A DNA stretch of 64,000 nt from Octopus bimaculoides (GCF_001194135.2 NC_068984.1:122836921-122900920), one strand, 5' to 3'; shown: positions 1-60,074, counted from the first letter of the stretch. Translations and numbers: made by a program. The notes: generated by a model from the letters alone, not told the origin.

Positions 1-423
1 TTGAGTAGTAATGTATGTGTGATAGAGATTGATAACTCAGATGCATTTAGCCTTGCTGTGGAACAGAGCTCACATGTTCTTTTTGGCATCTTTGGAATGT
101 ATTCATTTTAGTGATTTGGTGGGATAAAAAAACTACCTGGATTTGAACTGAGAGCAATGAATTAACGCATTGAATAAAATGCATCATGGTCTTTGACTCT
201 TTGTGCTATGAGTTCAGATTCTGCTTATGGCAACCAAGTTCCAACCTACTAAAAAAACAATCATCCTAATTTCAGAGTGAGACTTTGTGTATGTGTGTGT
301 GNNNNNNNNNNNNNNNNNNNNNNNNNNNNNNNNNNNNNNNNNNNNGGGGGGGGGGGGTATACTGTTTCTTTGTGGATTGGATTAGAAGGGAAAAAAAGCA
401 ACCAATTCAATAAGCGGGGAATA

Positions 424-711
424 CTATTTAATAATAGTATTTCCCGCTTATCGTTGCCAGTGCCCCTGGACTGGCTCTTGTGCGGGTGGCACATAAAAGA
501 CACCATTTCGAGCGTGGCCGTTTTCGTGCGGGTGACACGTAAAAGCACCCACTACACTCTCTGAGTGGTTGGCGTTAGGAAGGGCATCCAGCTGTAGAAA
601 CTCTGCCAAATTGGATTGGAGCCTGGTGTTGCCATCCGGTTTCACCAGTCCTCAGTCAAATCGTCCAACCCATGCTAGCATGGAAAGCGGACGTTAAACG
701 ACGATGATGAT
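424..711 (+). mobile_element. SINE/RTE-type 3' end with (GAT)n tail
   Basis: Ends ...catgctagcatggaaagcggacgttaaacgacgatgatgat; related copies at 23758-23950(-), 27451-27641(-), 40700-40870(-), 55600-55772(+). Confidence 0.8.
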
Positions 712-720
712 TATGATGAA

Positions 721-893
721 TAGTTGTAGATAAGTTATTTCAAGTTTCATACTTGAAAAGTACAATATTCAGTCACACTTATGTGATGTGTGCTGTATAC
801 GATCCAGGAATCATTCAGGCTATGGCTTTTACAAGCACAGCTGAATATCGTACTTTTCAAGTATGAAAACTTGAAGTAGCTTGCCCATAACTA
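721..893. mobile_element. MITE-like element with ~52-bp imperfect terminal inverted repeats
   Basis: 721-772 is the approximate reverse complement of 841-893 (core catacttgaaaagtac / gtacttttcaagtatg). Confidence 0.7.
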
Positions 894-921
894 CTGCATT
901 TATTAAATGATGGGGAGGAGA

Positions 922-958
<37 letters not shown>

Positions 959-1663
959 AAGGTACGGAAATAGATCAGACAGACAGATAGATCAATATGG
1001 ATTGGTATTTAAAATATATAATAAATATAAACTTTTTGTGTTGTATCATTCAACCAGTATTTACTTCAATTACTGCTTGTAATGTATTCTCTTCCTCTAC
1101 TTCTTTCTCTCTCTCTCTCTCTCTCCTTCCCTCTCTCCCCACACATTTTCATGTGTATAAACTCCTCCCTCCCCTTCTCTCTGTAACTTTCTTTTGCTCT
1201 CCTATTTCTCTTTGTGGAGGAGATGAACACTGGGAGTTGTGCCAGTTGTGTATATACCAAACCAGCAGCTCTGCTTTGTTATCACACACTGCACCATTGC
1301 TTCAATACTAGCCACCACCACCACTACTACCACTGGCCACCTGTCAGTTATGGCAATAGTCCAGTTTCTTGGTCAAAAATTTTGTCTCTTTTGTTGTTAT
1401 ATCTTTCAATGGTTGCCAAACAACTGTGAGTTCAAATCTTGATGCCTGCATTTTGTATGGTGTCTCTTATGAGCACAGTCATCATTAATTGACAGTAATT
1501 TGTTGTTGTCATTCATTAACTCTCACACAATTATGCTCAGCCTTATCAGTGGTACGTATGTGGCTGTTTGAATAATAGTAGATTGTTGTTGCCTAGTTCC
1601 AGATCAGCCCTGATCAAGCAACATTTCAGACCACCCTAGCTTTTATATAAATAAATATATATG

Positions 1664-1997
1664 TGAAGGTGCATGGCTCAGTGGTTAGTGTTGGGCTCAC
1701 AATCATAATGTAGTGAGTTCAATTCCTGAACCAGGCTGTGTGTTGCGTTCTTGACCAAAACACTTTCATGTTGCTCCATTTTACTCAGCTGTAGAAATGG
1801 GTTGTGTCATCATTGGTACCAAGCTTTTATTGGTCTTTGCCTTTCCCTTGGATAACATCAGTGGCATGGAAAGGGGACGCTGGTATGCATGGGCAACTGT
1901 TGGTCTTCCATATACAACCTTGCCCTGACTTGTGCCTTGAATGGGAACTTTCTAGGTGCAATACCATGGTCATTCATGACCAAAGGGGAGTCTTTAA
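1664..1997 (+). mobile_element. tRNA-derived SINE
   Basis: A-box-like tggctcagtgg and B-box-like gagttcaattcc, then a central gttcttgaccaaaacactt...ctcagctg domain; same head at 23071(+) and 61588(-). Confidence 0.8.
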
Positions 1998-2022
1998 TGT
2001 GTGTGTGTGTGTGTATGTATAT

Positions 2023-2072
<50 letters not shown>

Positions 2073-2608
2073 CTACATTATCCAATGTGACCATGCTTTT
2101 TTAAGGTGATAGTGTGAGAAGGGACATTTCAAACATCTTTTTACTTGAACAGTTAGCATAATTATTGTACATTACACCTTTAAATGCACTTGTTCTAAGA
2201 ATTCTTTCATAAACAATTGCATTTGAAGAACCATTTCACTCATACTTGCATGGTTAGAAGAACACAATCCTACTTCTTTGTAGTATATCAGATAATCAAG
2301 TCAGTAGGCTATGATACAACCTGTGATACAGTTAGTGGTCCATTTATTGTCAACAGCACTGTTCAGTGCCTATCACCAATACACTTAGCTCACAAAGATT
2401 AATTTTATCATTTGACTGTAGTTTCCCCAAACTCAGTCCATCATATCAGTAAAGCCCCTTCATTAATGCCTGTAACACCTACATCTAGTGTTTGGTTGGT
2501 TTAAATTCTACCCCCAAAACATCCCTCTCGCAGGATTGTTAAAACAATAGCAATCACTCATCATACACCCCACACATAATTTTACATTTGATATATCTTT
2601 TTCCACAG

Positions 2609-2707
2609 ACCGGATTCACACCATTGTACATGGCAGCACAAGAAGGCCATTCTGAAGTGGTCAAGTTTCTCTTGGACAACGGGGCTAGCCAGAGCCTTGC
2701 CACTGTG
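2609..2707 (+). CDS. ANK2: Ankyrin exon, ANK repeat 4 ([33 protein letters not shown])
   Basis: cag| acceptor, |gtaagt donor, 99 nt, phase 0-0; matches canonical ankyrin repeat 4 ([11 protein letters not shown]). The symbol denotes ANK2/unc-44-like; orthology not tested. Confidence 0.95.
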
Positions 2708-3802
2708 GTAAGTATTATTGTCCTCTTTTTTTTGTACAATTGTTATTAAATCTTTAATATTTGTAGATTAACAATAATGAAGTTCATATACATGTACATT
2801 TTACTGATGTATAATATATTAATGAAGTAATGAGATTTCATTTGAAAAAGCTACCCAATTTTGCCTGTTAGTTCAGTCGACAGTGGTTGGCAGAACCAAT
2901 TATCCACTAGTAAAGACAGTTACATAAAAAAAAGATTATCCCAAACTATGAAAGCATGAAAAAAATGGATATAATGCATTAAAAATAAATTGAGCAATCC
3001 ACTTCTTTCAATCACAGTCCACTATAACTGTGTGTCTTGGCCTTCATGAATAATACAAGTTTGTCTAAACCAGGCAGACTGTACTGTACTTTACTGCTAC
3101 TTTATGAACCTCGAAAGGATTAAAGACAAAGTTGGTCTTGGCAGGATTTGAAAGCAGAGTGTAAAAGAGCCAGAAGATATATTGCATGGTATTCTGCCAC
3201 TTCATTGCCATAATGATAATGATTTCTAACTTAATCCATTACCTCCCATAATTCTATTAACTGGAATTTTTTTTATGAAACTTTGATTTATAGCATAAAA
3301 CAGCCTTAGAAACATGCTGGAATGATCAAAATAACATTTCAAAATAACATTTTAAATAGAAATAAGCGAGATATTGGGTGAAAAATTAGCAAACCTCATT
3401 TGAATATCAGAGAAATATACCTAGTAGATATAGCAAAAAGGTTAGATATGTGTAAATATTGACAGATAATTACGAAATTTGTGATTTTTAAGTGATCTCA
3501 TATGAGATCACTGGTAGATAATGGGTTAAGCACAAGACCACAAGTTTTACTTGACCTTGTTACTTGGCTGATACTTATTTTATCAACTCCTGAAGGATGA
3601 CAGCCAAAAGTGGCTCTGACAGAATTCTGACTTAAAACATAAATACCTTTTTTTCTGATGGTCTCCTAATTCTATCATCTACTCCAGTAAGAATGATGAT
3701 GATAGTAATGATAGTAAAAACCTACCTCATCTAAAAGTGAATTTGTGTGAGATGTTCCACGGGTGAATGTAGTATAAATAAAGTATTTTGTCTCTATTTC
3801 AG

Positions 3803-3988
3803 GATGGTTTCACTCCACTTGCTGTAGCACTACAACAAGGGCATGATAAGGTTGTAGCTGTTCTCCTAGAACATGACACCAAAGGCAAAGTTCGCCTGCC
3901 AGCCTTACATATCGCTGCTAAAAAAGATGACATTGGATCAGCAAACCTTTTGCTTCAAAATGACCACAACGCTGACAGTTCTACCAAG
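3803..3988 (+). CDS. ANK2: Ankyrin exon, repeats 5-6 ([18 protein letters not shown]...[17 protein letters not shown]...DSSTK)
   Basis: ttcag|...|gtaagt, 186 nt; the short repeat 5 ending [10 protein letters not shown] is diagnostic of canonical ankyrins. Confidence 0.97.
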
Positions 3989-6966
3989 GTAAGTGTGGCA
4001 CATACTTATGTATGTATGTTTATGTATGTAAGAGAGAGAAAAGAGGTAGGTTTGTTGGCAGTGAAAAAGGNNNNNNNNNNGCGGGCGAGCGGGAGAGCGA
4101 GCGAGAGAGAAAGAAAGAAATTGGAAAGGTATGGAGAAAGAGTGTGTATATGTGCATGTGTACCTCTGTCAATGATTATGGATATGAGGCTGTGAACGTG
4201 TATGTTTGAGGTATTTGATTAGGAGGTGCTATGTATGAAATGTATGGTAAAGGTGTTGGATGTATTTATCTAGGCTCAAGGAGTTGATATGTGTGTTTAC
4301 CAACATTGAGAAAACATCATGTAATTCTGATTAAAATATGAAGAATATGATCCCTTCACCCATTTTCTTCCCACACTTCTTCAAGAGTCTTTTTAGCCCC
4401 CACCTTCCTCCAGGTCACTTGATTTAATTTGCATGTTTGATAGACTTAACCTAACCAATAAAACTAATACAATGTTTGAACTTAGACTAAAAGAGTGATG
4501 ATTTTTACCTGTTTTGATTTTTCTCTATCTACCTTGTCCAAGCTAAGGAGGAGTAGGCCCTCCTACTACATCAGTGTTAAGTTGCTTTTCTACAGGTCTC
4601 AATGTGAGAGGGGGGAGGGAGATAAGAACAACCCTGTCTCTAAAATGACAAGAGATCCCCCTTCCTCCCATAAATATGTGGAGACCACTGAAATGTAGCA
4701 GGGACTTAATGAGATTAAAACAGATGTAAAAACTAAGCGATGAAGAAGCTGATAAAGCTATTCCAGTAACTCTTCACATTTATTGCTTGAGACCCCTTCT
4801 ATGTTAAGTATGGCCATACTATTGAAAGGGATTTAAAACCCTTTCTCTCTGTTTATTATTGTAGTGTACTATTGAAGGTGGTTTCAGATTCCTTCTAGTA
4901 GATTGTTAAAGAAGTTATTAGACATCCATCTGTCTAGTAATAACTATTGTAGCTACATATACTTAACAAATTTATGCCTCTGCTTAAGAGATACGTCTCC
5001 AAGTGTTTAGCATATTATCTTTTAATAAGCAGTTACTCTCATCTAACTACATACTTGGGGTTTAGTACCAATTCCCTTATTTTTTTTTTATTTCTTTTAA
5101 TTCTTATAAGTACACATTTACACTTTGAAAGCAGTACCCTGTAAGTTCGCTTGCTTTGTGTAGATCATGAATTCAAAATCTGCTGCTTAAACAGGAAACG
5201 TATGTTACCTATTAAATCAACTGCCAGCAGAATGCAAAGTGAACATTTTTTGTTATTTGAAGGGAGCCTACTCTGTACCTTTCAGACAAGACATTGATGT
5301 CTACAGTCTATATAGTTATCTCCCTTCGCTACTAAATTGCCTCGATGATTTCGTTTTACCTTTATTATTATTATTTATTTTCGTCCAATTATAATATTGA
5401 TCCCAGCTTCACCGATGGACATACAGATCTTTGTTTCTGAAAATGGCCCTAGTTATATAGCCCTCCCTCTCATCTTAACATCTGCATGTTGTCTACTAAC
5501 AGGATTTGATATTGCCAAATACAATCTAACAAAGAAATGGCTTGCTGTGAAAATAAGCATGATATTTATGTTGATGATATCTAAAAAATATTTTATTTAG
5601 ATTTACAAGTCAGTAGATTCACAAATCAATAGATTCACAAATCATTAACATTTAATAACTGCAGGTCCTGTCTTTTCTTCAAATATAGAGTGTCTATTGA
5701 ATATATCCTTCCATTTTTAAGATAATAAAATGTGATTTCAAAGAGATTTTCCTGCTATTTCTAGCAGGTTGTTCAACTGCACAAAGGCTCCATTCATTAG
5801 CTTGTGGAGTAAATGGTTGTTCTTTGAGGTGTATAATAATTTGTGTCATAAATTCTGTATCCATAATGACAAAAGTTGTGGCTTGTTTAAAACTTTTATT
5901 AATCCCATTATCACCGTAGGAGCACAGGGCGGTTTAACTGTACTAAAGTAGAAAATAGTTTTGTAACACCCAAGGTTATCAAGATTACAACGATGTTGTC
6001 ATTTGAATAACTAAAATATCATCACCTAAATAACAAAACTGAAATAAACAAATTTCTTGATTGTTAAGCAGGTTTAGCTAACACATTAGCTTCATCAATA
6101 ACATATTGATATGTCCATTTGGGACATTGATGAATATGATGAGTGTTTTTTTGTTTTTTTTTTATCTTAACAATTATAAGGCATTTAAAGATTTTGAAAG
6201 AGATGATATTTGTTTGAATTTAGTCTAGTGTGTTATCATGTTTATAATATTAAAACTATAGTGAAAAAATTAACACAAAATTAACCCTAATGCAACATAT
6301 AAACCCAGACAAATGAGGCTGTGAACTCAGATGTGATATAACAATTCATGCAGGTTCTCTTGCCTTCGGTGCCATCAGCACTCACCTGTTACTTAACAAC
6401 AGTAGTAATAGTAATGAATTAATAAAAGTAATGATAATAATTCAGTAATAATGACAATTTAACCAAAATAATTTGATAATAATGTTGTGATTGTTCAGTA
6501 GAAATAATAATAATAATAATAGTTTCTAACTTTAGCTGAAGACAAATGAAATAATGGCAGTTTAACAGCAGCAGTGATAAGGATTTAATAATATTATTAA
6601 TTTTAATATTTATAATAATAATAATAATAATAGTAGTAAAAAAATTGTTAAAGATGACTAACAGGAAACAAACTAGTATCGTTTTCTCAACACAATGTTT
6701 AAATGTGTGCATAAGCAGCAACTGAATATGAAACAAATGATATGATTGCTAATGAAGTCACAACACTATTTACAGACATTCATGTCTGGTGTTATGAGTT
6801 CATTAACAACTATTAGTTTCACATTTAGTTGCAAAACATTTGCTCTCATCTGTTTTGTTATGATATATATTATACTATTAACATCTAAATAATACACACA
6901 CAGACACTTGTATGTAATTTACAATATAGCTTTATATATAGATATATATAATTGTCACTAAAGTTA

Positions 6967-7240
6967 ACTAGGGTGTTTGGAACATCTACATTGCTAGAAA
7001 TAAGAGCTAAAATGCACTAATGCTGTAGTCAGTGTACATAAACGTAAGCATATACACTAACAGGGGACTTTAATCGTCCAAAAAATGCCAATCAAGAATT
7101 CCTAATACTGACATCAGTTTCGGCAATTTCATCTCAGTTAGGACTGGCTTGAACTTTGGCTCTTTTTGGACTCGTTGACTATAGCATTACTGCATTTTAG
7201 CTCTTATTTCTAGCAATGTCAGTGTTTCTAACACCCTAGT
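6967..7240. mobile_element. MITE-like element with 65-bp terminal inverted repeats
   Basis: 6967-7031 is the reverse complement of 7176-7240 with few mismatches (acattgctagaaataagagctaaaatgca exact); no clear TSD. Confidence 0.75.
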
Positions 7241-8270
7241 CACATTTAGTAACAATTATAATTCTTCTTTTTGGTGAAACATTGCGACTGCTGTTTATAT
7301 AAATGTTATATATATATATATAAAAAGCTTGTTGTAAATTACATATATATAATTATTAATTATTTGTATATCTTAAGTCATTTTTACTATAAATTATATC
7401 TCTGTTATAAAGCAAAATTGTACATAAATTACAATAGTCATTTGAGACACTTGACATCTCTGTTTCAGTGTCTTTTCCATATTCTGACATTTAAAATTTT
7501 TTTTTAATATTTTCTGAAGAAGCCATAAGCACAATTAAGGGAAGAAATTAAGAGAAATAATAATGTTTTCTAACATTGGTACAAGACTACAAAAGAGTGC
7601 ATATCTCAGTTTTATCAAATATAGTCCTCTATGAGGACAGACTTTTTTAAGGCAGGGGACATTTGCATATATCCACATGCACACACATTCACACATTTAT
7701 GTGTCTATGTATACATGCTGCTGCCACAAAGAAGGATTGAGAAGTTGCATTACATTAAATTTCTCAACTTGAAATACTTGTGGCTCCACATATTTATTCA
7801 TATTCTTGTCTATTCCTCCCGTTCCATACTGTGCTGCATTCATTAGACAGTCTTTTGGGTGATTGCTGTAGCATATCAGTTTTTTTCTTTAAAAGGTTGC
7901 TAATCCCCTTTTGTAGCCCTTCATTTCTGAGGAAAAGGACACTTTCCAGTGGTCTCCCACAACTCTTCTCACACTGCACCATAGTTGAATCCACAAATGA
8001 AAGACAGGGAGCAAGAGAATTGAACCTAGTTTACTGATACTTTATCAGCTCTAGAAGGATAGAAAGCAAAATGAAACCTTGTAAGATTTGAACTCAAGAT
8101 ACAAATCCTGCCAAGGTTGACTTTGCCATTCATACTTCCCAGTTGAGTATTTGCAGATCAAAGTCCCAGTCAAGTATTTGCAGATCAATTTAACCTATTA
8201 ACCCTTCCCCCAAATTTCTAACTTTGTGCCTATAATTGTTAGAAACAATTATAATTGTAGGTTAATTAGT

Positions 8271-8493
8271 TTAACCTTTTAGTTTTCAGATAACTCTATC
8301 AAAGATAATGCTTATCTATTCACATTGTTTTGAATTAGTCATGCATTAGCTTGTAGTTTTGAGATTTTGATAATGTGGTTTCTTTTTAGAATGACATTGT
8401 AGGGTAGGTGTGAGAAACCAGATGTGGCCAGTTTGAACATAAAACAAGAAGAATATTTTGGCCAGATATGGCCGGTTTCAATGTTAAAGGGTT
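8271..8493. mobile_element. piggyBac-type (TTAA) MITE
   Basis: ttaacctttt ... aaagggtt ends, ~220 bp. Confidence 0.55.
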
Positions 8494-9013
8494 GTGGTAT
8501 AATTTGTATTTTATTGGTTTTCTTTTCAAGTCATTCCATTAATTAACTTCACACCTCAGGGAAATCAATCAAGGCAAGATAATAAATTGATTTAAGTGAA
8601 GTGAATTAACCATATCACTTCACACTTGCAAAAATATACCTCTAGATGAAAAAACACCCTAGCAGCTTTATGATTATTATTATTGATGGTGGTGGTGGTG
8701 GTGGTGGTGGTGTTGTCCGTCTTAAAAGATATAGGAATTAAGTTGACAGAATATAAGACATTTCCTGATTTACGAGTTCATACTCTGCTGCAGGCATTGT
8801 CTTCTGTACCTTGGGCGAGACTTAACTTTCTCTGCTCCAATGTACATTGTATCTAGTTAAATCATAGTAATTTTCTTGTTGTTTGCAACATGGTTATTCC
8901 TCTTGCCTTACATATTTTTTCATGTACATAATTTTTTTTAATGTTTTTTTTTTTCAATTCCATTCATATATATATCTATGTTTTTTGTCTTCTATTTCTG
9001 TGTGCTCTTACAG

Positions 9014-9043
9014 AGTGGTGGGTTGGTTAATGACACAACTAAG
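9014..9043 (+). CDS. ANK2: Ankyrin 30-nt microexon (SGGLVNDTTK) between repeats 6 and 7
   Basis: Pyrimidine tract + tgctcttacag| acceptor, |gttggt donor, frame-preserving; peptide resembles the vertebrate ANK2 insert MMVNRTTE at the same junction. Confidence 0.8.
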
Positions 9044-11299
9044 GTTGGTATCTGAGCCCTAACAACCATTTAGAGCCTCTATTCATTGTTCCTCTCTCTC
9101 CGTTGTTGTTGTTGTTGTTGTTATGCCCATGATCGCATCTCACCGCCTATCATGATCGCATCTCACTCCACCTGTTGTTTACCCTGTGCTGCATGACTTT
9201 CCCGTTATAACATTCCACTTCCCTGAATGCTTTTCCCTTTCACATTGATGTCATGTTTAATCATTTTGCTTAACACATTTTGCTGTCTTCCTTCCTTCCT
9301 TTATAACAGTCCCCTATCTTTTCCTCATATTACAGTCATTGGTTGTTTAATTAATGTTCTTTTGTAAAACAAACTCAAAGATTTATGGAAAAAAATAATA
9401 TTTTGGGTGATTTTGTTTTTCTTATTTTCTTTTTTTCTTTTTTTTTGGCCTCATGGTAGAATCATGATAGTCTTTAAAAGACACACAGGTGTAATACAGT
9501 TTTAGGTTTATTTGTAATACAGTTTTAGGCTCTAAGTTGAGTCTAAAGGCTCTAAGTTGAGCCTAGAGGCTCTAAGTTGAGCCTCTTTGTCCATCATCCT
9601 TCCAAGATTAAATAAAATACTACTCAAGTACTAAGGTTGATTTAATTAACTACCCACCTGATTAATTTCTGGCCTTGTGCCTAAATAAGAAATGATGTAT
9701 TACTAGGTAACATCAAATTTGCCATTCATCTACAACCTACCTGGCCAGTGGTACTCTATTCTTGCAGTGTGATACGGTAGAAGCCGTACCAGCATAGTAA
9801 CTGCTCTGCCGATATTGGCATTTTATTTTATAAAGATACTATTACCAAACAGAAGTACTATTACTATGTAATACTATACCTTGTATTACTATACTTTGCA
9901 ATACTGTTGCAAAATATAGATTAAAAGAGTGACTACAACAGTATATGTGTGCTGTACATGGATGTATCATGGTTCTTAATACCATGAAAATATCTTATTC
10001 AATACTCAATCTTCAATCATCCTTTACTAAAACTATTAAACTTCTCAAAAAACAATTGGCTTTTTTTTTTTGGCGGTGGGGTGGGGGTTTGTAAATTGAT
10101 TTTTCTTTCCTCCGTGTTTGCATGAGTGACCCCAATGCATTATTTGGGGGAGTCAGTTGGTGTGTTTTTTTTTTTGTTGCTTTTTTAAAAAATTAAAGTT
10201 GTATGTATGCCCTTCTTAGTATTAACCACAGAGCAGTTGAGGTTAACTCCCTTGCTGCGGGTGAGGGCTCCAACAAAGTGGCTATAAGGAGTTTCAAAAT
10301 AACTTCTCATGACTTTGTGGTCAGTAGTTCAACGTTTTATCTTCCTTATATTGTCCACCAAAACCTGTAAGGTTTAGCAATGCAGGAGGTGTACAGCTAT
10401 CATTTGCTGAACTTCAATTATTATCTCTACATTAACCCATTAACAATGGATGGTCAGAATTCTATTTTTGCTTTTTTAATCAATTATGTTTGATCAGATT
10501 TCACACTTCTTGCTCACTCTGTGTATATGTGTGTACTTAATAAATACATGTTTAGTCTCACACTCGTAGGACCTTTAACAGCTTGAAATGATTATTGAAC
10601 TAATTATTTTCATTTAAACAGTCATTAGCAACCATTGACTCTCTCTTTCTGTTTGCCAAGGCAGTTTTTGAGAAGCCAGTTGTGTCCATGAAACTTAGAA
10701 GTGAATAGTCACAATTAATATTAAATATATGTACACTGTACCTTTAATTTAATGGGCTGACCTTGTCATGCAGTGTCGTATTGATTCTGACTGAAAAATA
10801 CATTAAGTATACATGTTGCTGTAGACTAGTTGATCACTTAGATTATAAGTCAATCAATTGGTTTCTTAATTCACCAAGCAGTTTCAATATTCATTGTAGA
10901 AACTGCATGATCCACCATATATATATATATATATATATANNNNNNNNNNNNNNNNNNNNNNNNNNNNNNNNNNNNNNNNNNNNNNNNNNNNNNNNNNNNN
11001 NNNNNNNNNNNNNNNNNNNNNNNNNNNNNNNNNNNNNNNNNNNNNNNNNNNNNNNNNNNNNNNNNNNNNNNNNNNNNNNNNNNNNNNNNNNNNNNNNNNN
11101 NNNNNNNNNNNNNNNNNNNNNNNNNNNNNNNNNNNNNNNNNNNNNNNNNNNNNNNNNNNNNNNNNNNNNNNNNNNNNNNNNNNNNNNNNNNNNNNNNNNN
11201 NNNNNNNNNNNNNNNNNNNNNNNNNNNNNNNNNNNNNNNNNNNNNNNNNNNNNNNNNNNNNNNNNNNNNNNNNNNNNNNNNNNNNNNNNNNNNNNNNNN

Positions 11300-11342
<43 letters not shown>

Positions 11343-11540
11343 CACATATACATAAATGCATGTGTGTATGATGTATTGAGCTCTTCAACATTACTCAACC
11401 ATTATCAGTAAGTAAACACATTCATTATAGTTGTTTCATTTTTTAGCCCTCTATTTGCTTTCTGTAGTTGTCATGTTTTGCACATTTCAGAAGCTGCTTT
11501 TTCATCTCAAGCACACACACCTACACTCACTCACACACTC

Positions 11541-11585
<45 letters not shown>

Positions 11586-13189
11586 CATGCATGCACATGA
11601 ATGTGTACATGTAGATATGTGTTTATATTATGTATTACCTTAACAGTTGTCAGCATGTGGAACTGATCATGGAATGTTTTCTGATTATCTCCCTTCCACC
11701 ACTTACTTGACTGTATAGCTTGCACATAGAAAACCCCTCTACTGGTACCTATTCGCCAGTGCGGCCCACATCACTCTTACCATCAGAATCTTTCTCTCAC
11801 TGTCAGTTCTTATGATTCTGTTCTCACTGGTAAATGCCTGTCCCCTTTCACTATCTATGATTGTTGTATTTTGGGATTGTTGTAAGTATCATGTTGTCTT
11901 CTGAACTTTTATTCTTTTATTCACCTATATGTATTTTGTGTGTGTGTGTGTGTGTTTGTTTGTGTGTGTGTGTTGAGAGAGAAAATAATCTTTCAGATGA
12001 AAAAGATACAACTACAAATCAGCTGAACCATGAGCAAAAGATGTCAAACAACACAGAGGCAGACAAACAAAGCTTCAAAGGAACATTGATAGTCAACTTA
12101 AAACAAAGTACTCAAAGCAAGAAGTCTTAGGAGTCAAGATATTTAATCAATAACCATGAACCTGCCAAATATCTTTTGTTAAACTTATGATGGTTGATTG
12201 AATATCATGTATGTGAATGTGTGTACAGGAGTTTATTGAGATGTTTAATAAACTTATATTTAGTATCACTGTGAATAAATAGACAGAAGTGAATAAGGGA
12301 CCAGCCAGCTAGTTTCATCCTTCTTAAGATTCATCAGGGATCGTTTCCTTATTTCCTTTGAAGACCACGCTCCCAAGAATATATTCTCTTGTGCAAAATG
12401 TAAACTACAATTGCTGTGAAGTAATGGGCCACACAAGTACAAACACATGAGTAAAAATGTGTTCAAAATATTTTATGCATTTAACTGAAACAGTTCCTGT
12501 TATATTTTTACTCCCATTTAACAATTAATTCTTCATTTATATTATCAAAAAAATATAAGTGAAGAGATGATTTGTTTTGTGTTTTTTACTTTTCATTTAT
12601 ATAACATTTATATCCCCTTTGGAAAGATATATTCTTAATAACTTACATTGTTTTATGTGAACATGGAATTCCTGTTCTTTATGCACGATCTAAATAAATA
12701 TGAAACTCCATTACTCATTTGTGTGTAGTATTTGGTATAGGAACACATTTGTGAAGGGGCCATCCTTTGTTGTAGTACTATCCAATGTGATAGTACCATC
12801 CCAGTGTATAATGATACTATACACTTCAGTTGTTTCAACTCATTGTAGTGGTACCATCCCTTGTAGTGATTGTTACTGATCAATTCATAGTTCTTTTAGT
12901 GCTTCAATGAGAATAGTACTTGGTAAATGCATAGTTGTTGACTGAGGTAAATTTGATTTTAAATCATGTCTGGCTCTTTTAGCATAAAGTGTGTTACCCA
13001 ATTGTTTAGTATCAGCCTTGGGCTTTAAACCTCAGATCATAGTTGCAGAGCTGTGAATAAAGACATTTCAGCCATGACCACCCTGTCTTTGCGTGTGTGT
13101 ACACATATACCCTATGCTATGTATCCTGATGAGGTCAGCCTTGCTTGAGTAAACCTATGACCAAAAGTGTTCCAGCCATGACCAATCAA

Positions 13190-13228
<39 letters not shown>

Positions 13229-13872
13229 ACTCTATTGTTCAGTGTGTTATTTTTAATATGTCAAATGACTATGTAGTAGTTCCCTCATTATGAAGTAAAG
13301 GGGAAATGGCTGTGTGTAAGGTATTGGATTACCTATTATGTGTGAGATCAAATCTGCTGTGGATATTTCATTTTAATTCTGAGCAAAACACTTTTTTTCT
13401 ATATCACCTCAATTTACCTAACTATAATGAAATCGTAGCGGATTAAAAGATACCACATCATCTGGCAATGTTACTTATGATTGGCTGGTGTTTTTACTGT
13501 AGAAGAGATGTATCTTTCATCACTGTATCTTTGGAGGGTGAACCATATTCAGTACAATCTCCTTTCACTTAGCTGTCAGAAGGAATGGATCCAGATCATC
13601 TTGGAAGACTAGTCATGATAGACTGATGTCATATCCAGAGAGAGATTTATCTACTTTTAGCTTCTTACTAGATCACTAGTGGTAAACACTGTTACTTAAA
13701 AGTCTGAGAATTTGGAGAAATTTACATTTTTAAATTGTGTCTGTGTGACTATGAACGTCTATGATTTTGCAACAATAATTGTCTTGTGGGTACCATTTTG
13801 TGTTTATCATCCCTACACATCTTACAATCTCCTCTTTAACCATCTTGCTTACCAAGTCTTTTTATTCTACAG

Positions 13873-13971
13873 AGTGGTTTCACACCATTACACATCGCTG
13901 CACATTATGGCAATGTCAACGTTGGTACTCTACTTATTCAAAAGGGTGCAGACGTCAACTACAAAGCTAAG
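13873..13971 (+). CDS. ANK2: Ankyrin exon, repeat 7 ([33 protein letters not shown])
   Basis: ctacag|...|gtaagt, 99 nt, phase 0. Confidence 0.97.
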
Positions 13972-26618: not shown

Positions 26619-27450
26619 GTATGTTTGTCTATGACATTTCTCTTTTTCATTGGTCTATTTACTTTCCTTCTCTTTGCTCTTGTTTCAGTTGTGATTTTTG
26701 AAAGACAGATATTGTGTGTGTGCACGTGCATTGTTAATTACAATATAGTCTCTACCTCAACTGGTTGGCAGTTATGCATATGTCCTTGCAATTGGATTAA
26801 TAATTTCATGCAGACATGCTCATAGGTGTGTGTGTGGAAAACTTATAAATTGCATGTATGTTTATGGGTACAAGAGCACACGAGCATATGTTTACATATG
26901 CATGCACACACATACTCTCTCTCACACACACACATACACTTTGTGTTTAAGAAGTAGATTATGCTACAGAATGTCGAGATAGACATCATAATAAACTCAT
27001 GAACTACATGCATACACTTTGGTTGTGCCAAACAACTTGAAGCTTCCTAAAAGTGTCCAGGTGTTCTAAGATGTAAGGCTCTTTCTAAATGTATTCTCCA
27101 TATCCAGCATAAGTTCCACTAGAATTGCAACCTGTGAACAGAATCTTGTCTGTACAAAGGCGCTGAAAGAGAGCATCTGCACTGGTGTGGACATATGATA
27201 GAGGTAGTCATTAATTAATGGGTAAACAAAACGTGCCGTAGGAGGTAGAAAGTAGCAACGATAGAGAATATGACAAGATTAGAACTCAGGAAGGTGGTAT
27301 CTGTTGTATAGAATGGTAGTGTAAGACATGAGTGGAAGTGGTGAGGTTAGTTCTCAGGATGTTTGGCCCCCACAGATCAGGTGATGCAGGAATATGATGA
27401 GCTGTTTCTTTTGAGCTAAATGTATGCCTATCAGTACAGTGCTCCACCCC

Positions 27451-27641
27451 TCATCATCATCATCATCGTCTAACGTCCGCTTTCCATGCTAGCATGGGTT
27501 GGACGATTTGACTGAGGACTGGTGCAACCGGATGGCTACACCAGGCTTCAATCTAATTTGGCAGAGTTTCTACAGCTGGATGCCCTTCCTAACGCCAACC
27601 ACTCAGAGAGTGTAGTGGGTGCTTTTACGTGTCACCCGCAC
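27451..27641 (-). mobile_element. SINE/RTE-type 3' end, young copy
   Basis: Reverse complement of 526-711 with about 6 differences in ~186 nt (manual count). Confidence 0.9.
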
Positions 27642-27700
27642 TTGTGACTCAAACTCCTTCTTAGTTACTGTCAATAACAACACACTGATAAATTGTTGTT

Positions 27701-27747
<47 letters not shown>

Positions 27748-29151
27748 GTGTATGTATATATCTATATATGAATATATATATATAGACGTATGACTGTATA
27801 TATAAATCAGTGTTAACTGAAGTTCTGTGAAATTTGTTCTTTTCATATTTTTGTGCAAGGAAGAAAGTATCAATTCCTTTGGCCCATGCATTTTCATGTT
27901 GGCATGGATTACACTCACACACACATGCACACTCTGAATGCATCAGAGCTTAGTCATTTCATTCTAAATTATTTTCAATTTTCTCTTTATACCTCTTGAC
28001 ACTGCCTTGTCCACAGTTCACAGCTCTCAAGCGTTTCTACAAAGATAACTTTTGTGATTTGATGCAGAGAAAATGGCATGAGTGTTGAGGTTGTCTTCAC
28101 TTATTTTTATTTACATCTTTCATAGATTTTTGTCTCTTGCACAGTTAATTTTCTTCCACCCATTATCATCATATCATTTCCATTAATAACTTTCATGTCT
28201 CTGGGTGAGGTTGAATTGGTTTGCAATGTTGCCTTGCTTCTTGGTCATTCCTCCTAAAAGCTTCACAATACTTTGTGTTTCCTTGTCCTATTTCTATTCT
28301 ACCTACTTTTTTTTTTTTAACTATATGTGGGCAACACAAAGCTTATCTCCACCTTACACATACACATTTCTCCCTTCCTCTCTTCAGCAACCATAATAGC
28401 TTTATGAATGTTTATGTTGTTCTTTAGATCTCTGGTCTACACTGACCAAGCAATCCTATGATCAAAGGTGTTGATTTCATCCTATTATTCCTGCATCTAA
28501 AGCTATATCATCCACTGTGTCCTTCCTTTTTTAAGACAGTAGGGTGTAGTTTCAGAGATTTAACTGCATTTTCTAGCTGGTCAAGTAACCTCATAGAGGC
28601 TCTCTATGATGTGATCAGCAATATATTCATACTGCCTCAGTGTTGTCCTTAGAAATAACTGCTAGTTAGTATCAAATAGAATGTCCTTACAATGCCAAGG
28701 CATTCTACTGTTAAGTTTCACATTATATGACAACGCTGTCCCTTGTTACATCATAATGTCCAACCATGTGGTAACTGAGATAAATACCTATGTTGTCAAT
28801 GTCTACAATATTATGATAAGGACCCAGAACAATATTATGTTAAAAACCCAGTAAGACAACAAAATCCATTTAATTTAGAGAAGTCCCAGTGAAACTTTAT
28901 CTGGGAAACAATATCCGCTACAGTAATATATAATCTAAGAGACTGGAGTGCATTAAAGTCATTGGAAAACTAACTGTTTGGACAGTGGTTTGCAGAAGAA
29001 TTGGTAGGGCATTTGGTATTTGTTCTGTTCCTTTGTGCTCTAAGTTCAAATTCCACTAAGGTCAGCTTTACCTTTCATCCTTCTGGAGTTGATATTATGA
29101 AATAATTAATAACCCCCATCCCCTGTGTGCCAAAATTTGAAGTCATTATTA

Positions 29152-29189
<38 letters not shown>

Positions 29190-30179
29190 GTATTGTCTCA
29201 TCACTGAAGACTGGGTATTTGGTTTTGCTTTACTCATATCTCAGACTTATCATTTATAATTAAAAATAGTTGTCTTTTCGTATGGGTGTGTCTGCTGGAA
29301 TATGACAAAGATAATGCAAGTGAGAGGTGTGAAACATCTTGGCCAACATACTTATTGTACATGAACAACTTGAGAGCTCAATCTAATATAATGTTGCTGT
29401 TGTCATTGCTGCTGCTACTGCTTCCTTGCATATGTACACACATTCTTTTATGTGTGACTCTAGATTCTAGCTCATCCACCTGCCATCACCCCTTGTGCAC
29501 TTGCTATTGCCTTGCAGCCTACAGCTCATCATCACATCCCTGACTCATCCTTTTCTCTCTCTCACTCCCCACTCTTATATAATTGATGTCCTTTTTTATC
29601 AAGACAGCAGTAGTATTGATCCTACTATATTTCATTTTTGGATTGTCCAATCCATCTCAGTACAGTAAAGGTGATTGAGAGAAGGAGAGACAGGTTGTCA
29701 GCTGGGCTTGAATGGAAGTGGTATCTAAGTATATATCTAGTTCAGACAAGCAGAGGCCATTATAGTAATGAGGAAAGAAACAGAGTAAGGAAACTACAAT
29801 TCTGTTGGAAGTCAGAGGTTGTAGTACTTTTGTGAGTGAGTTTTTGCCAGCCAGCTTCTTGGCTTTCTTTTGGATGCAGTTTGTGGTGTTAGTGTATGTA
29901 GTATCATCCCTGTGCCACATACAGGAGCACTACTCATATATGTGTAACTTGAGCTTTGTAGACAAGCTCAGTAGTTGATCAAAGGTCATGTATTTTATGG
30001 CTTTGAAAGAGGAGAAGTCAGTCTTCATGATGCAGCTTTTGCTATGTTGTGTATGTGGAATTGCCAGAAAAGATCACCAGAGAGTGGGAGAACATGATTG
30101 TATTTTAGATAAGTTATGATCCTAAAAGTGTGTGTGTGTGTGTACACATTGTAGTTAACTTAGTATTGTCCCAAAGAGG

Positions 30180-30900
30180 GCCACTACTTGGAAGATTATA
30201 TTGTTGCTTAGCTAATATGACATCCCAGATTCGTTCCTACCTGAATGAATATACTCATTGTTGCTAGATTGGTTTTTACACTTCCAAGATGGTTCTCAGA
30301 TAGATGACTAAGAAATCTATCTTGTGTAATACAAGGCCAGTGCCTAAACTCTGCCTTCCATCCATCTAAATTTAGCATATTCTTTTGATGTCCCTACTTG
30401 TATAACTGAATTGTACACGAGATTATTAGGAAACTCATTTAATCAGTTAATATTAATCTTGTACACAAATATTAATCCTGGACATGACTGAATGTTGTGT
30501 CAGACACTTGACCATCAAATGTGAAACCCTCTCACTATGACCATCAGCAAAGATGTTATCTGATGGCTATTTCTGTAATTCACAATACTCTTGAGTAAAT
30601 TTTCCCAAGTAAACATTCCCAAATTACTGCAGCTATCACTGATGCCTTCAGGTCACTTGAGCAATTATTAGTGCCCCCTGGCATGAATTTACTTCCTGGT
30701 CAGTTTGATCCTCAGTAGTATTCTCAGGTCAGTCTGACAATCAGTGATATTCTCTATGATCATCTAACAAATGTCATGAACGACACTCTCTGGACTGACC
30801 TGGGACTGAGCAACAATCAACATATATTCTGCATGTTACAGATACATTATTTTAATAACATATATTTAAGCTAGGTCCATGAGCCAGCGAAAGAGAGCCT
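30180..30900 (+). mobile_element. Possible highly decayed non-LTR retrotransposon RT remnant
   Basis: Only faint motif resemblance (RSYL..., VIQGQCL resembling VPQGSVL); no ORF. Confidence 0.25.
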
Positions 30901-31360
30901 CTACAAAGTTATGTAGTCTGCAAGAAATAGGAGGCAAACCTTCCTCCAGTTGCACTCTGCAACTTAAAAATTGGAATTTTAGATTCATTATATTCATAGC
31001 TAGCATATCCTTGACCATAGATGTGTTGGAAAAAGGCTAAACAAGAACACCAACTAAAACACTGTCCTCATGATGCCTGTTTTAATATTAAGCTTCATCT
31101 CTTTTCTCTTTATCATTAGGATTAAAAAATAGTATTGAAAATCCTGCCAAATAATTCATACATATATATATATATATGTATATNNNNNNNNNNNNNNNNN
31201 NNNNNNNNNNNNNNNNNNNNNNNNNNNNNNNNNNNNNNNNNNNNNNNNNNNNNNNNNNNNNNNNNNNNNNNNNNNNNNNNNNNNNNNNNNNNNNNNNNNN
31301 NNNNNNNNNNNNNNNNNNNNNNNNNNNNNNNNNNNNNNNNNNNNNNNNNNNNNNNNNNNN

Positions 31361-31417
<57 letters not shown>

Positions 31418-34400
31418 TACCAATTGTTATGTTACTGGCTTCGACTAATGAACAGCTCCTTGCAAAATACTCTAACAACTATTTTTTGTTGTATTTGATA
31501 AGACAAGGAATGACCTTTTCACAACCATATTATCTGATAAGTTTTGGCTAGATGTAATCCAGACTAGAACTAGCATTGTAGTAACAACACCTGTGGTGTA
31601 ATAAATATCATATAGAAGAGCCTTTTAGGAACCAATGAACAAGCTTTCAAGAGCCATAAAAGTGGCTTTCAGCAATTGTTGAGCAAGCTTTCAAGCACAA
31701 GATTTGCTGTTCCTCTTATTTTCTTTACTTTTGAATTAATACCTCAGGATAAGGCAGTGAGTTGGCAATATTGGAAGCACGCTGGACAAAATGCCTAGCA
31801 GCATTTCTTCCAACTTACATTCTGCATTCGAATGCTGTCAATATTTATTTTGTTTTTTCATCCTTTTGTGGTCAACAGAATAAGTACCAGTTGAGCACTG
31901 GTGTTGATGTAATCAACTTCCCCATCACCACAAAAAATTGCTGGCCTTGTGCCAAAATTAGAAAGAATTATACTTCAGGAGGATGAAATGATGTCTTTCT
32001 CTCTGAACACTGAAATCACATCATCGTCATCATCAACATCGTCATCATGACATCAACAAAAAAAATCTGGTTTGTAAGTTAGTTGACTAATTACATAAAC
32101 AGTCTTATATCAGACTAAGCACATTACAATATTTGGTTTCATCTCTCTGTGTTTGCTAAATTAAAATTTCACCATTGAGATCAGTTTCTTTTTATATTCT
32201 TTCAACCTCCAAGGTCGAGGAAATTATATATGTGTGTGTATGTATGTACTTTGAGTGATTCAATTTGCTATAGCCCTCTGTGCATTCAGAATCTGTCCTT
32301 GTACCTAGTCAAAAGTAACCATTACCCTTCTAGGCATACACTGCTGCTTTGTTCTTACTCCATTCATTGGAGATGTTATTTTGACTGGACCAAACCAATT
32401 CTTGTCAAAGATTCTATCTCAATATAAATTAATAGGATTATTCATTGTTCTCCATTTTAAAATAATGTTTCTGTTGTATTTATTTCTGTTTTTCTTCTCA
32501 ACTTGCCAAGGCACCATTCCTCTGCTCATTGTTTTACTGATTATTATCTCTTTATTATTGTTATTTGTTCATGATTGTATACATAGCATAGGTGTTGATT
32601 ACTTGGAGGTAAAAATGTCTCTTTCCACCAGGTCTGAAGACATCAGACAGAAAATACTTCCCTTAGAATATTTAAAACAAAAGAAAAGCTAAGAAAAATT
32701 TGTTAAGTCTGTAGAGTGATGAACAAAATGCCTTCCAGCATTTGGTTGCATCCCTCCAAGTTCAAATCCTGCTAAGGTTGATTTTGTTTTCATTCTTCTC
32801 ATGTTGATAAAGTAAGTACCAGTCAAGTATTGAAGTTGATTTCATCAACTTTAACCTCTCCCCAGAAATTATGTTAGATATCAATATTATTATTATTATT
32901 ATTATTTCAGTTGAGTACAATCTATGTTATGATTGTAATTATTCAGACTATTCATCTTTATGGATGGAAAATGTTTTGTTATTTACATCTTCATAGTCTA
33001 TCAAGTGATTTGATCTCCAGTCATTATCAGTTGCTCTCTTCCTGGATGTGTACACAGTACCAGATTGGATTTGAACAAGGAAGCTGGTGTCCCAGCATGA
33101 CCACAGCCTTAGGGCTGAAACATGTAAAAGAATAAAAGTGGTAACATTATTATTATCTTCTAGGCCTCATGCATCACTGACCTTTAAGAGTGTTACTAAC
33201 CTTAGTTTAGAAATAAACACTCCTAGTTTGAATGCATGCTGGTACTATGTACACATCCAGGAACAAGACACCTGATGCTAATTAAAGATCATACAAATGA
33301 GACTGTTTTGTATATGTAAATATTAAAGTATTTTTCATCCCTAAAGATGAAGTTAACAGTCCAATAAATTGTATTCACAATAACTCTTCTCAGACATTGA
33401 AACAAAGTATCTTCTTGTTTATGGAAGGCCAACAAAAGCTTCTGTGTGTTTCCATTGATTTGTTGATGACTGTTGTAATACATTACACATCACTGTAGTT
33501 TATTTCAATTTTTTTTTCTTAATAAAACTGCTGACAGCTATTTGTTCTGTTCATGTAGCTTCCTCATACAGTGGTAAGTTGTAGACTTTTATGGAAAAAA
33601 AAAAATGAAAAAAAAAAAATAACTGCTCCTGGTGCTGAAGCTCCATCCCCAATCCCACCCCATACCAATTCTGTTACCACCTCCACCCAGCATAGCTGAT
33701 GCTGCTGTGTCTCCATGCGGAGCAGTTTGATAGCTTCATTTATTTATTTACTCTCTTTCACATACACATTATTTTGAAGTCAGGGTTGGGTTAATCCTCA
33801 GTATCTAGGAAAGCCCTCTTGCCAGCTTTTTGCTCTGCAGCCAGTTAAACAGGAAGGGTCCCCTCACACTTGTTTAGTGCCTTTAGTAAAACAAAGAAAC
33901 TGCCTGGTTGATTCTCAGACAAAACACTGACCCTACTTCTTGTTCTTTCAGAACATGAAATACTTTTTAGGAATATTTATTTTGAAATTACAACCTTTAT
34001 AATAAGACCAGAATTTCTTCTTTGTGTAAAGCAATAGTTTGTCATGGATGAGATGTATAAGAAATCTACTGCCTGAGTGTATCCATGATCTTGTTAAGGA
34101 ATAAAGAATATTTATTCAGAGAAATTTAGAAGTAGCAGTTATCTTGTTAGATTCTGATAATCTTGGATATGAATGGTGGAGCTGATTGTTAAGTTGATTG
34201 GATACAAGAAAACTGAAACAAGAATGGGAAAATAGTTCATATGCCATCACTGTTACCATGTTGAGTCCTTCTTGTTCTTAGATGGTACTTTAGATGACAC
34301 AATAGAACTAATGACAGCGCCATGGAATTGATGAGTAAATGTTGATGTGCAATGCTGAATTCAGTTCTCTCACAAAGCCACGTAAAACACAAACCGTGAC

Positions 34401-37004: not shown

Positions 37005-37038
<34 letters not shown>

Positions 37039-39900: not shown

Positions 39901-39942
<42 letters not shown>

Positions 39943-40617
39943 GATTTCTTTTATTAGCCATAGGAGCTATCACAAGGACAAGCTATAATGTGTGTGGTGG
40001 GGAAGGGTTAATAGTAATAATGGGTTTTAAATTTTGGCACAAGGCCAGCAATTTGGGGGAGGGGGAAATTGATTTTTTTCAACTCAAGTGCTCATCTGTT
40101 ACTTATTTTATTAACCCTGAGTAGGATGAAAGGCAAAGTTAACTGACCATGACAGGATATTAACTCAGAACGTAAAGATGGATGAAATGCCACGAAGCAT
40201 TTTACCTGGCATACTAACAATTCTGCCAGTTCACCATCTTATCCTTAAGAGTAATATTAGAAACAGCAGCTCATCATTCCAACTATAGGTCCCTAACATT
40301 TATTATATCCATCTCTTCTGTAAATACTTTTACCGCTATTATTTGTATTTCTACATCTCCATAAAAACAATTTAGTTTTTAGAAATCTTACATTCCTTGA
40401 AGTTCTTCTAATTAAACCTTTAACTCTTGGAGTGTTCCTGTTTGTAAGAGTATATTACGTATGTGTGTATGTGTTTAGTTAAGAAGTTTTCCTTAAGGCC
40501 ACATGGTTCCAGGCTCATTCCTAGTGTGTTGAAGCTGTCCACTGGTGTCTTCTACTATGACCACAGATTGACCAGATTGTGAGTGTAATTTGATGAATGG
40601 AAACTGGAAGAAGCCTA

Positions 40618-40654
<37 letters not shown>

Positions 40655-59191: not shown

Positions 59192-60074
59192 CAGGGTGTG
59201 ATGGGTAAATTGTGGCCATTTGATATTTTAATTTCGCGCATGCGCATTGTTTGTTTTTGATTTTGTTGACTACACAGTATAATAGGATCAACTGGACACC
59301 ATCTGTGAGAAAAACAGCACCATGACACAATTCACTCTGCCAGAAATTTTTAAATGGCATGCAGTACTACCTGGCATTTGCGCCAGAAGCTCCAATACGA
59401 ACATTTCAGAGTGTTTGGGTCTCAATCCGAGGACAGTGCAATCTGAGGACATGTACTGAGAGTGATAAAAATCAAACATCCAGTCAACATCATGGTGTTT
59501 GAAGTGATCACTAGTGATGGCAATGTTATGTCTCCATTCATCTTCCCACATGGCCTCAGACTCAACACAGAGGCCTACATCAACTGCATGGTGGAGGTAG
59601 TGCTGCCCTGGGTCAAGAAGGTGGCTGCTGGAAGACCCTATGTCTGGCAACAGGACTCTGCACCATGCCACACCAGCAGAAAGCCCAGTCATAGCTGTCA
59701 GGCAATTTGTGACCACATCATCCCTAATATCTGGCGACCTAACTCCCCAGACTGCAACCCCCTTGATTATTATGTGTAGGGTAAAGTTGAGCAAGAGACC
59801 AACAAAACTCCTTGTAACACCAAAGATGAACTGAAGGCAAGGATTATGGCCACACTAATCAACTTAAACAAGGTGACTGTCCAGAAGAGTTGCAGGAGAT
59901 TCTGAAGTCGTCTGGAAGGTGTTGTTGAAGCTAATGGCAATTTTATTGAATAAATTTACTCTTTAGTATTTCAAGATATCTTTATGTAATTTTGGTTAAA
60001 ATATCTGTTAAAATTAAATGTTAGTGTTATTTTCGTTTTTGCATAATTTAGACAACAGTTTCTTCACCGCATCC

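Follow-up and report, generated by a model that had tools for sequence, protein, structure and literature searches.

The window analysed here, the whole 64,000-nucleotide stretch of one strand of the Octopus bimaculoides genome (GCF_001194135.2, NC_068984.1:122836921-122900920), carries ankyrin-repeat (ANK) exons of the canonical/giant ankyrin gene LOC106871604. We retrieved the gene product by an exhaustive profile search with a spliced 204-residue fragment. The protein, XP_052823414.1 (P0130; 7,515 aa), is titled 'uncharacterized protein LOC106871604 isoform X43' in Octopus bimaculoides and matches all exons in the window exactly. Mapped back on the window, it occupies 18 ANK-repeat exons between 2609 and 47141, all of them in phase 0. 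Over residues 29-1658 it aligns collinearly, at 68% identity, with a small canonical ankyrin from the slug Arion, and the O. bimaculoides products contain Pfam Ank families together with PF00791 (ZU5), PF17809 (UPA), and PF00531 (death). The host gene has the organization of a canonical ankyrin: 24 ANK repeats, then ZU5-ZU5-UPA and a death domain.

Between two late ANK-repeat exons (AGYTPLHT...ASVSSTTK and LGYTPLHQ...ASPNAVTN) lies an 18.9-kb intron (26619-45469), by far the longest in the repeat region, with assembly gaps at 31184-31360 and 36560-36799. Further along the window, at 59288-59794, long overlapping open reading frames (ORFs) occupy both strands of intronic sequence; the plus-strand ORF at 59462-59779 (...VWQQDSAPCHTSRK...NSPDCNPLDYYV) resembles what we take to be a Tc1/mariner-type transposase remnant.

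The subject of this study is a 30-nt cassette microexon on the plus strand at 9014-9043. Its sequence, AGTGGTGGGTTGGTTAATGACACAACTAAG, translates as SGGLVNDTTK, residues 225-234 of isoform X43, and falls between ANK repeats 6 and 7 (R6 and R7). The constitutive exon upstream (3803-3988, plus strand) encodes ANK repeats 5-6, equals residues 163-224 of XP_052823414.1 exactly, and ends in ...TCTACCAAG (ACCAAG), followed by gtaagt with the donor at 3989. The constitutive exon downstream (13873-13971, plus strand) encodes ANK repeat 7, equals residues 235-267 exactly, and starts, after cag, with AGTGGTTTC. Both flanking junctions are in phase 0, so that the 30 nt preserve the frame. The microexon itself is flanked by ...ttttttgtcttctatttctgtgtgctcttacag and gttggt; it runs from AGT, preceded by the acceptor cag, to AAG at the GT donor. 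It divides the 9,884-nt host intron (3989-13872) into segments of 5,025 and 4,829 nt. Its length, a multiple of three, is at the upper edge of the 3-30-nt range that defines microexons (3-27 nt in the strictest usage).

The first-pass annotation had described this exon, with its AG/GT sites, preserved frame, and 9.9-kb intron, as the window sequence bears out. It had also called the exon invisible to the ORF track, and the six-frame ORF list holds at this position just an unrelated 59-aa ORF in another frame. The microexon is not hidden from public annotation, though: from the 2015 annotation onward, RefSeq and UniProt contain models that include it and models that skip it. With the first 1,700 residues of X43 as query, we retrieved 49 O. 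bimaculoides isoform clusters, among them the 2015 RefSeq entries XP_014773636.1, XP_014773629.1, and XP_014773640.1 and UniProt A0A0L8H* entries. SGGLVNDTTK is included in 23 of the 49 and skipped in the other 26, where ...SSTK passes directly to SGFTPLH. These counts are of gene models as deposited, and part of the models may be combinatorial predictions; at that level, inclusion and skipping products occur in one organism. The microexon is therefore a recorded cassette exon, hidden only from the ORF scan and already present in public annotation.

How far could a short open segment of this kind arise by chance? We ranked open AG...GT candidates of 9-51 nt by their similarity to the human ANK2 insert MMVNRTTE and to MVVNRATE, the human ANK3 insert. 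The microexon came first of 258 candidates in the host intron, with a score of 21 (runner-up, 16). In the whole window, on both strands, 1 of 3,764 candidates attained 21, the microexon alone. Nevertheless, 60 of 1,000 dinucleotide shuffles of the host intron (6%) also reached 21, and so the similarity score by itself is weak evidence and leaves some room for a chance pseudo-exon or an annotation artefact. Other observations count against that explanation. Across 621 kb, a search for the motif with splice sites gave 26 matches on gene strands, of which 25 fall in the expected intron and the remaining one at the end of a genuine ANK exon; the reverse strands of the same 621 kb gave zero. Twenty-three genomic copies are conserved with synonymous variation, and independent transcript-derived sequences from Aplysia and Glossoscolex contain the insert. 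On the strength of this conservation, the 25 expected-intron matches, and the empty reverse strands, we reject a chance origin, which we regard as very improbable indeed. The decisive evidence for the exon is its conservation across species together with its existing annotation.

The exon is widespread among lophotrochozoans. Annotated or transcript-derived gastropod inserts read SGGLVNDTTK in Babylonia and Nucella and GGLVNDTTK in Biomphalaria, Elysia, and Aplysia; the bivalve inserts are DGGLVNDTTK in Mytilus, TGGLVNDTTK in Saccostrea, and VGGLVNDTTK in Potamilus. In the nemertean Tubulanus, the insert is SGSLVNDTTK, present in 15 of 15 listed isoforms, and 14 of 15 listed oyster models have the insert. 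Two transcripts of the earthworm Glossoscolex read NGGLVNDTTK and TGSLANDTTK, and one spiralian-like transcript has ...MPAVNETTK. At the genomic level, we found an orthologous exon of 27-30 nt, with AG/GT sites, in phase 0, and in the expected intron, at 22-23 loci besides octopus: the invertebrate contigs L001 (ENA ERZ25767047) and L006 (GCA_022702875.1), Elysia crispata (L007), and 20 metagenome contigs. The metagenome copies form groups with the peptides NGGLVNDTTK, NV[SC]LVNDTTK, TGSLANDTTK, [GE]G[GED]FVNCTTK, and [ED][GE]NTVNSTTK. Heterobranch gastropods have a 27-nt exon, chordates one of 24 nt.

V, N, T, and T do not vary in any of the 23 genomic copies that we aligned and are written with 3, 2, 4, and 4 different codons, respectively. 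The eight closest copies (L001, L006, L007, and metagenome group A) differ from octopus by 4-7 synonymous and 0-2 non-synonymous codons; the remoter copies show 3-5 non-synonymous codon differences. Invariant residues with synonymous variation mean that selection acts on the peptide, and the microexon peptide is under purifying selection across the copies compared. The description of the microexon as deeply conserved thus stands, since molluscs, annelids, a nemertean, and other invertebrates carry an orthologous exon in the same intron. A search of the orthologous intron in other molluscs, annelids, and amphioxus had been proposed; the exon is present in the first two groups, and one amphioxus gene model has no insert. 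The mollusc insert was absent from protein matches to short junction queries, both among the 120 listed of 1,181 and in 6 of 6 in a second search, such queries matching only proteins not much longer than themselves.

Several of these loci have features of their own. In Saccostrea cucullata, the ankyrin-2-like isoform X3 (P0316) carries at the R6/R7 junction the six residues DFHSVG in place of TGGLVNDTTK, which suggests a putative second, mutually exclusive microexon in this intron; the octopus, L001, and Elysia introns yielded no DFHSVG-like second microexon. Six AT-rich contigs with small introns (L063 and L076-L080) have a [GE]G[GED]FVNCTTK exon flanked by introns of 58-82 nt and about 300 nt, and all six have GCATG about 65 nt upstream of the next exon. 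An annelid-like paralogue group (L059, L061, L062, L064, and L067; ...LLLQNAHNIDKTSGK) spans the whole intron, and no VNxTT-type microexon was found in it; here, the microexon is either lost or more divergent. Upstream of its ankyrin exons, L001 has long intron-free stretches that match ANK repeats by tblastn (357-1091, 1154-1735, 1801-2292, 2432-3166, and 3229-3810); judged by these matches, the interval 357-3810 looks like tandem copies or a distinct gene with ANK repeats.

A comparable insert exists in chordates. The AnkB crystal constructs 4RLV, 4RLY, and 5Y4D read ...QSKMMVNRTTESGFTPLH with the insert, confirming that human ANK2 has the 8-aa MMVNRTTE between repeats 6 and 7, as the first-pass annotation had stated; AnkR/ANK1 is without it. 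In the fish contig L033 and the mammalian ANK2-type contigs L036 and L038, a 24-nt exon of its own encodes MMVNRTTE, with unchanged intron position and phase. Other carriers of the insert are Ciona, Clavelina, and Botryllus (RIVNRITE), hagfish (ERINNTTE), and an ORF from a marine metagenome (NNIVNRTTE). Across tunicates, hagfish, and vertebrate ANK2/ANK3, the inserts have 8 residues, are MMVNRTTE in most, and share the N-x-T-T core with octopus. Vertebrate models with and without the insert both exist (Passer ANK2 and rat Ank3), and so the chordate exon, like that of octopus, has inclusion and skipping isoforms. In Pimephales promelas, ANK2 models (P0182 and P0290-P0298) show both MMVNRTTE and MMVNRTTENGK, that is, nine extra bases; the NGK extension comes either from use of an alternative donor or from an additional exon of 9 nt.

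The placement of the octopus exon at the same junction as the chordate insert is upheld: it lies in the R6/R7 intron, in phase 0, and has the V-N-x-T-T core in common. The chordate exon likewise follows ...SK of repeat 6, precedes SGFTPLH of repeat 7, is in phase 0 on both sides, has an invariant V-N-x-T-T, and is a separate tiny exon within a multi-kb intron (L033 and L036). The same intron and phase, between an R6 exon ending in ...K and the SGFTPLH exon, hold for octopus, Elysia, annelid-type, fish, and mammalian-type loci. The two exons differ in length (24 versus 30 nt), in their start (MM versus xGG[LF]), in their last residue (E versus K), and in their donors (gtac.. in chordates versus gtt.gt in the octopus type). 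Resemblance beyond that of an ANK loop is harder to establish: V-N-x-T-T is invariant in 23 copies, yet VNxxTK, TTK, and TTE endings also occur in constitutive repeats.

The chordate MMVNRTTE exon is either an orthologue of the octopus exon or a convergent solution. Under common ancestry, the microexon was present in the R6/R7 intron of the protostome-deuterostome ancestor and was lost in arthropods, nematodes, echinoderms, and amphioxus, often with its intron. This would account for the use of the same intron and phase out of about 20 equivalent ANK-repeat introns, for the near-identical lengths of 24-30 nt, and for a V-N-x-T-T core invariant in 23 of 23 genomic copies, the fish and mammalian ones among them. 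The sequences of hagfish (ERINNTTE) and tunicates (MMVNRTTE, NNIVNRTTE, and RIVNRITE) fit as well. A simple route of loss is visible in arthropod-type loci (L008-L013, L015, L016, L018, L043, L047, L065, and L068-L075), where the R6/R7 boundary has no intron or the intron has moved into repeat 6, to a position after ...LLLQ; such loci therefore have no host intron for the microexon.

The distribution of the insert weighs against common ancestry. Among the available gene models and single isoforms, those of echinoderms, amphioxus, a priapulid, arthropods, and nematodes gave no insert. It is absent from the RefSeq representatives of three echinoderms (Diadema, Apostichopus, and Acanthaster) and of Priapulus, from five further echinoderm sequences (two of them from transcriptomes), from one amphioxus model, and from the sequences of Lottia, arthropods, C. 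elegans, cnidarians, and Trichoplax in S2 Table of Jegla et al. 2016. Gene models often miss microexons, a point in favor of common ancestry. The animal contig L088 retains a 113-nt intron at the R6/R7 junction, and there is no microexon inside it. As it stands, the distribution requires at least three losses under common ancestry, versus two gains. We give common ancestry a little less than an even chance.

Convergence holds that lophotrochozoans and the tunicate-vertebrate lineage independently gained a short exon in the same intron, where selection favored an extra ANK finger-loop motif. It agrees with the patchy distribution and with the differing N-terminal halves (xGG[LF] versus MM) and last residues (K versus E). 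Moreover, many constitutive ANK exons in this gene themselves finish on a V-N-x-x-T-[KE] core (for example, ASIEATTE); what the two inserts have in common is the general consensus of ANK loops and could have been reached twice. Its cost is two independent gains in one and the same intron of about 20 equivalents, with identical phase and an identical spacing of V, N, T, and T from the donor. Because the conserved residues are generic ANK loop residues, two gains are about as likely as one gain and several losses, and we put convergence at even odds.

The same generic character bears on how the exon arose. A partial exon duplication had been proposed on the grounds that the microexon begins AGTGGT, as the next exon does, and ends ACTAAG, close to the ACCAAG of the previous exon; both resemblances are present in the sequence. 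In such an origin, a neighboring ANK-repeat exon would have been duplicated and its helices deleted, leaving the first two codons and the last eight, so that the peptide would be a repeat start (SG) fused to a repeat end (GxxVNxxTK). All ANK exons of this gene, however, begin with xG and end with T/K-type codons, and the resemblance is therefore generic. Across species, the microexon opens with S, N, D, T, V, E, or G or lacks this residue altogether, and a nucleotide signal cannot survive more than 500 million years. An origin by exon duplication is compatible with a loop-like peptide; it is speculative, and we think it improbable.

What might the peptide do in the protein? In the ankyrin-B structure, the groove that binds targets is built from the finger loops and inner helices, with repeats 2-6, 7-10, and 11-14 making up sites 1, 2, and 3 (PMC4358367). 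The position between R6 and R7 therefore places the insert at the border of site 1 and site 2. HMMER aligned sGGLVNDTTKSGFTPLH to the inter-repeat loops of AnkB, such as GAAVDFTARNGITPLH and EGANINAQSQNGFTPLY; the ordinary AnkB loops aligned in this way include GAAVDFTAR-NGITPLH and EGANINAQSQ-NGFTPLY. ADHSLTTK is among the endings of constitutive octopus repeats. S-G-G-L-V-N-D-T-T-K appears to imitate the canonical inter-repeat finger loop (G-A-x-V-N-x-x-T-K before x-G-x-T-P-L-H), and inclusion would thus set a second, more canonical loop motif directly before repeat 7.

We modeled the octopus R4-R9 fragment with and without the insert using AF2 and a shallow 13-row alignment. The models keep the solenoid; with the insert, mean pLDDT is 88 and the TM-score to 4RLV is 0.82. 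Values below 50 are confined to residues 88-96, the constitutive NADSSTK and the first inserted residue, where loop confidence is low; residues 101-110, which comprise NDTTK and the first residues of repeat 7, average 82. Without the insert, no residue falls below 50. From these models we infer that inclusion would give repeat 7 the canonical loop, displace the constitutive N-A-D-S-S-T-K as a flexible bulge, and lengthen the R6-R7 finger, which lines the inner groove where targets bind, at the border of site 1 (R2-6) and site 2 (R7-10). A probable consequence would be an altered fit of membrane partners or autoinhibitory segments across the site border. The solved structures are directly comparable on this point, as those of AnkB all have the insert and those of AnkR do not.

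The sequence around the microexon carries signals that may control its use. In the acceptor region (8868-9013, plus strand), no AG occurs over 144 nt (8868-9011) before the acceptor AG at 9012-9013; the region also has a pyrimidine-rich tract and, at 9003-9005, a UGC. No other of the 18 ANK exons in the window has so long an AG-free zone (the constitutive exons have a median of 41 and reach at most 118), and the 40 nt upstream of the microexon are 75% pyrimidine; a strong CUAAY branch point was not seen in the AG-free zone. The claim of a pyrimidine tract with a UGC within 11 nt of the AG is thus correct, the TGC occupying -11 to -9, and only 3 of 17 constitutive octopus exons have a TGC within 25 nt of the acceptor. 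The 5' splice site, GTTGGT (9044-9049, plus strand), is weak, with T at +3 and G at +4. It is the sole donor of this kind among the ANK exons in the window; 15 of the 16 others have a purine at +3 (the exception is gtcagt). The Elysia donor, gttggt, is identical to that of octopus, and L001 and L006 have gtctgt. A weak donor in all lineages was considered as a rule and rejected, given annelid-type and AT-rich loci with an equally odd donor on the neighboring constitutive exon; since annelid-type constitutive donors are also non-consensus, it is only in the mollusc, L001, and L006 loci that a weak donor sets the microexon apart.

The first-pass annotation had also pointed to a TGCATG at 9190. 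This Rbfox-type hexamer is present (9190-9195, plus strand, 148 nt downstream of the microexon), but it is not conserved: L001, L006, and Elysia have no GCATG within 300 nt downstream, and we rejected the hexamer as evidence.

In flies and mammals, the eMIC cis-code comprises a UGC by the 3' splice site, a long AG-exclusion zone, and a U/C-rich tract, together with a weak 5' splice site in fly (PMC8797185). The octopus exon has the UGC by its acceptor, the long AG-exclusion zone, and the pyrimidine tract; the UGC occurs in some lineages only. The UGC at -11, combined with a weak donor and an extended AG-free zone, indicates that inclusion is probably regulated, possibly in the manner of Srrm234/eMIC. 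As in eMIC microexons, the octopus exon is at most 30 nt long, preserves the frame, and belongs to a neuronal scaffold gene; eMIC microexons are neural and eMIC-dependent (PMC8797185), whereas the octopus exon is a candidate for this class by its sequence signals, with a UGC that varies across lineages.

Dependence on Srrm234/SRRM3/4 (eMIC) as a neural microexon would explain why the octopus signals, including its weak 5' splice site, match the fly and mammalian code. The UGC recurs at -11 and -8 in mammalian-type ANK2, at -10 in four of five group-A annelid-type copies, at -5 in L001 and L006, and in L086. It is absent near the acceptor, however, in Elysia, fish L033, groups B and C, and most of group D. 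In L001 and L006, the UGC is part of TGCAG, which their next constitutive exon has likewise, and 3 of 17 constitutive octopus acceptors also have a TGC within 25 nt. Furthermore, the inclusion of the exon in all 15 listed nemertean isoforms and 14 of 15 from oyster suggests near-constitutive use there. We hold eMIC dependence tentatively, as a possibility that falls somewhat short of an even chance.

Our main reading combines these lines of evidence. With a probability of roughly 0.85, 9014-9043 is a genuine, alternatively included coding exon of LOC106871604 that is conserved and selected at the peptide level, that would supply a second finger loop at R6-R7, and whose inclusion is probably regulated. 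A stronger version would make the octopus and vertebrate exons one ancestral bilaterian microexon, retained for more than 550 million years in a membrane-binding solenoid that is invariant in other respects, lost with its intron in arthropods and nematodes, and acting as a neuronal Srrm234/eMIC switch that retunes the border of site 1 and site 2; we consider this version unlikely.

Other microexon systems help to place the exon. The Ank3 microexon E35a is also an alternatively spliced, deeply conserved ankyrin microexon (PMC12713133). It is common to ANK2 and ANK3, though not ANK1, belongs to the disordered stretch that links the UPA domain to the death domain, and is reported to be conserved in vertebrates, whereas the octopus exon lies in the 24-repeat membrane-binding domain and is lophotrochozoan-wide (PMC12713133 for E35a). 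Ancestral bilaterian neural microexons are known from APBB and MADD, in a study that had Octopus bimaculoides among its species (bioRxiv 10.64898/2026.09.05.749416). Those microexons pre-date the protostome-deuterostome split, and the ankyrin exon is a candidate for the same status. The study required insects and vertebrates and does not mention ankyrin (bioRxiv 10.64898/2026.09.05.749416); because the host intron is absent or shifted in insects, the ankyrin exon could not have qualified there. One broad ankyrin phylogeny trimmed the R6/R7 insert region from its alignment. In the searchable literature on the insert peptides, on repeat-domain microexons of ANK2/ANK3, and on octopus microexons, we found no description of the exon. 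As far as that literature shows, its lophotrochozoan-wide conservation and its chordate parallel are undescribed.

The exon per se changes nothing, being already listed in RefSeq and UniProt. Its significance lies in its setting: a 10-residue insert in the most conserved part of ankyrin is itself conserved at the level of single residues in molluscs, annelids, and a nemertean, and it mirrors the 8-residue insert of tunicates and of vertebrate ANK2/ANK3. The existing AnkB structures (with the insert) and AnkR structures (without it) could already reveal what the insert does. Should the two exons have a common origin, the insert would be one of the rare microexons that pre-date the protostome-deuterostome split, and its host genes have links to autism, bipolar disorder, and arrhythmia; the R6-R7 finger would then be indicated as a tunable element of the binding groove. 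If it were in addition a single ancestral exon switched by eMIC, it would stand as a third deeply ancestral neural microexon beside those of APBB and MADD, in a major disease gene family.
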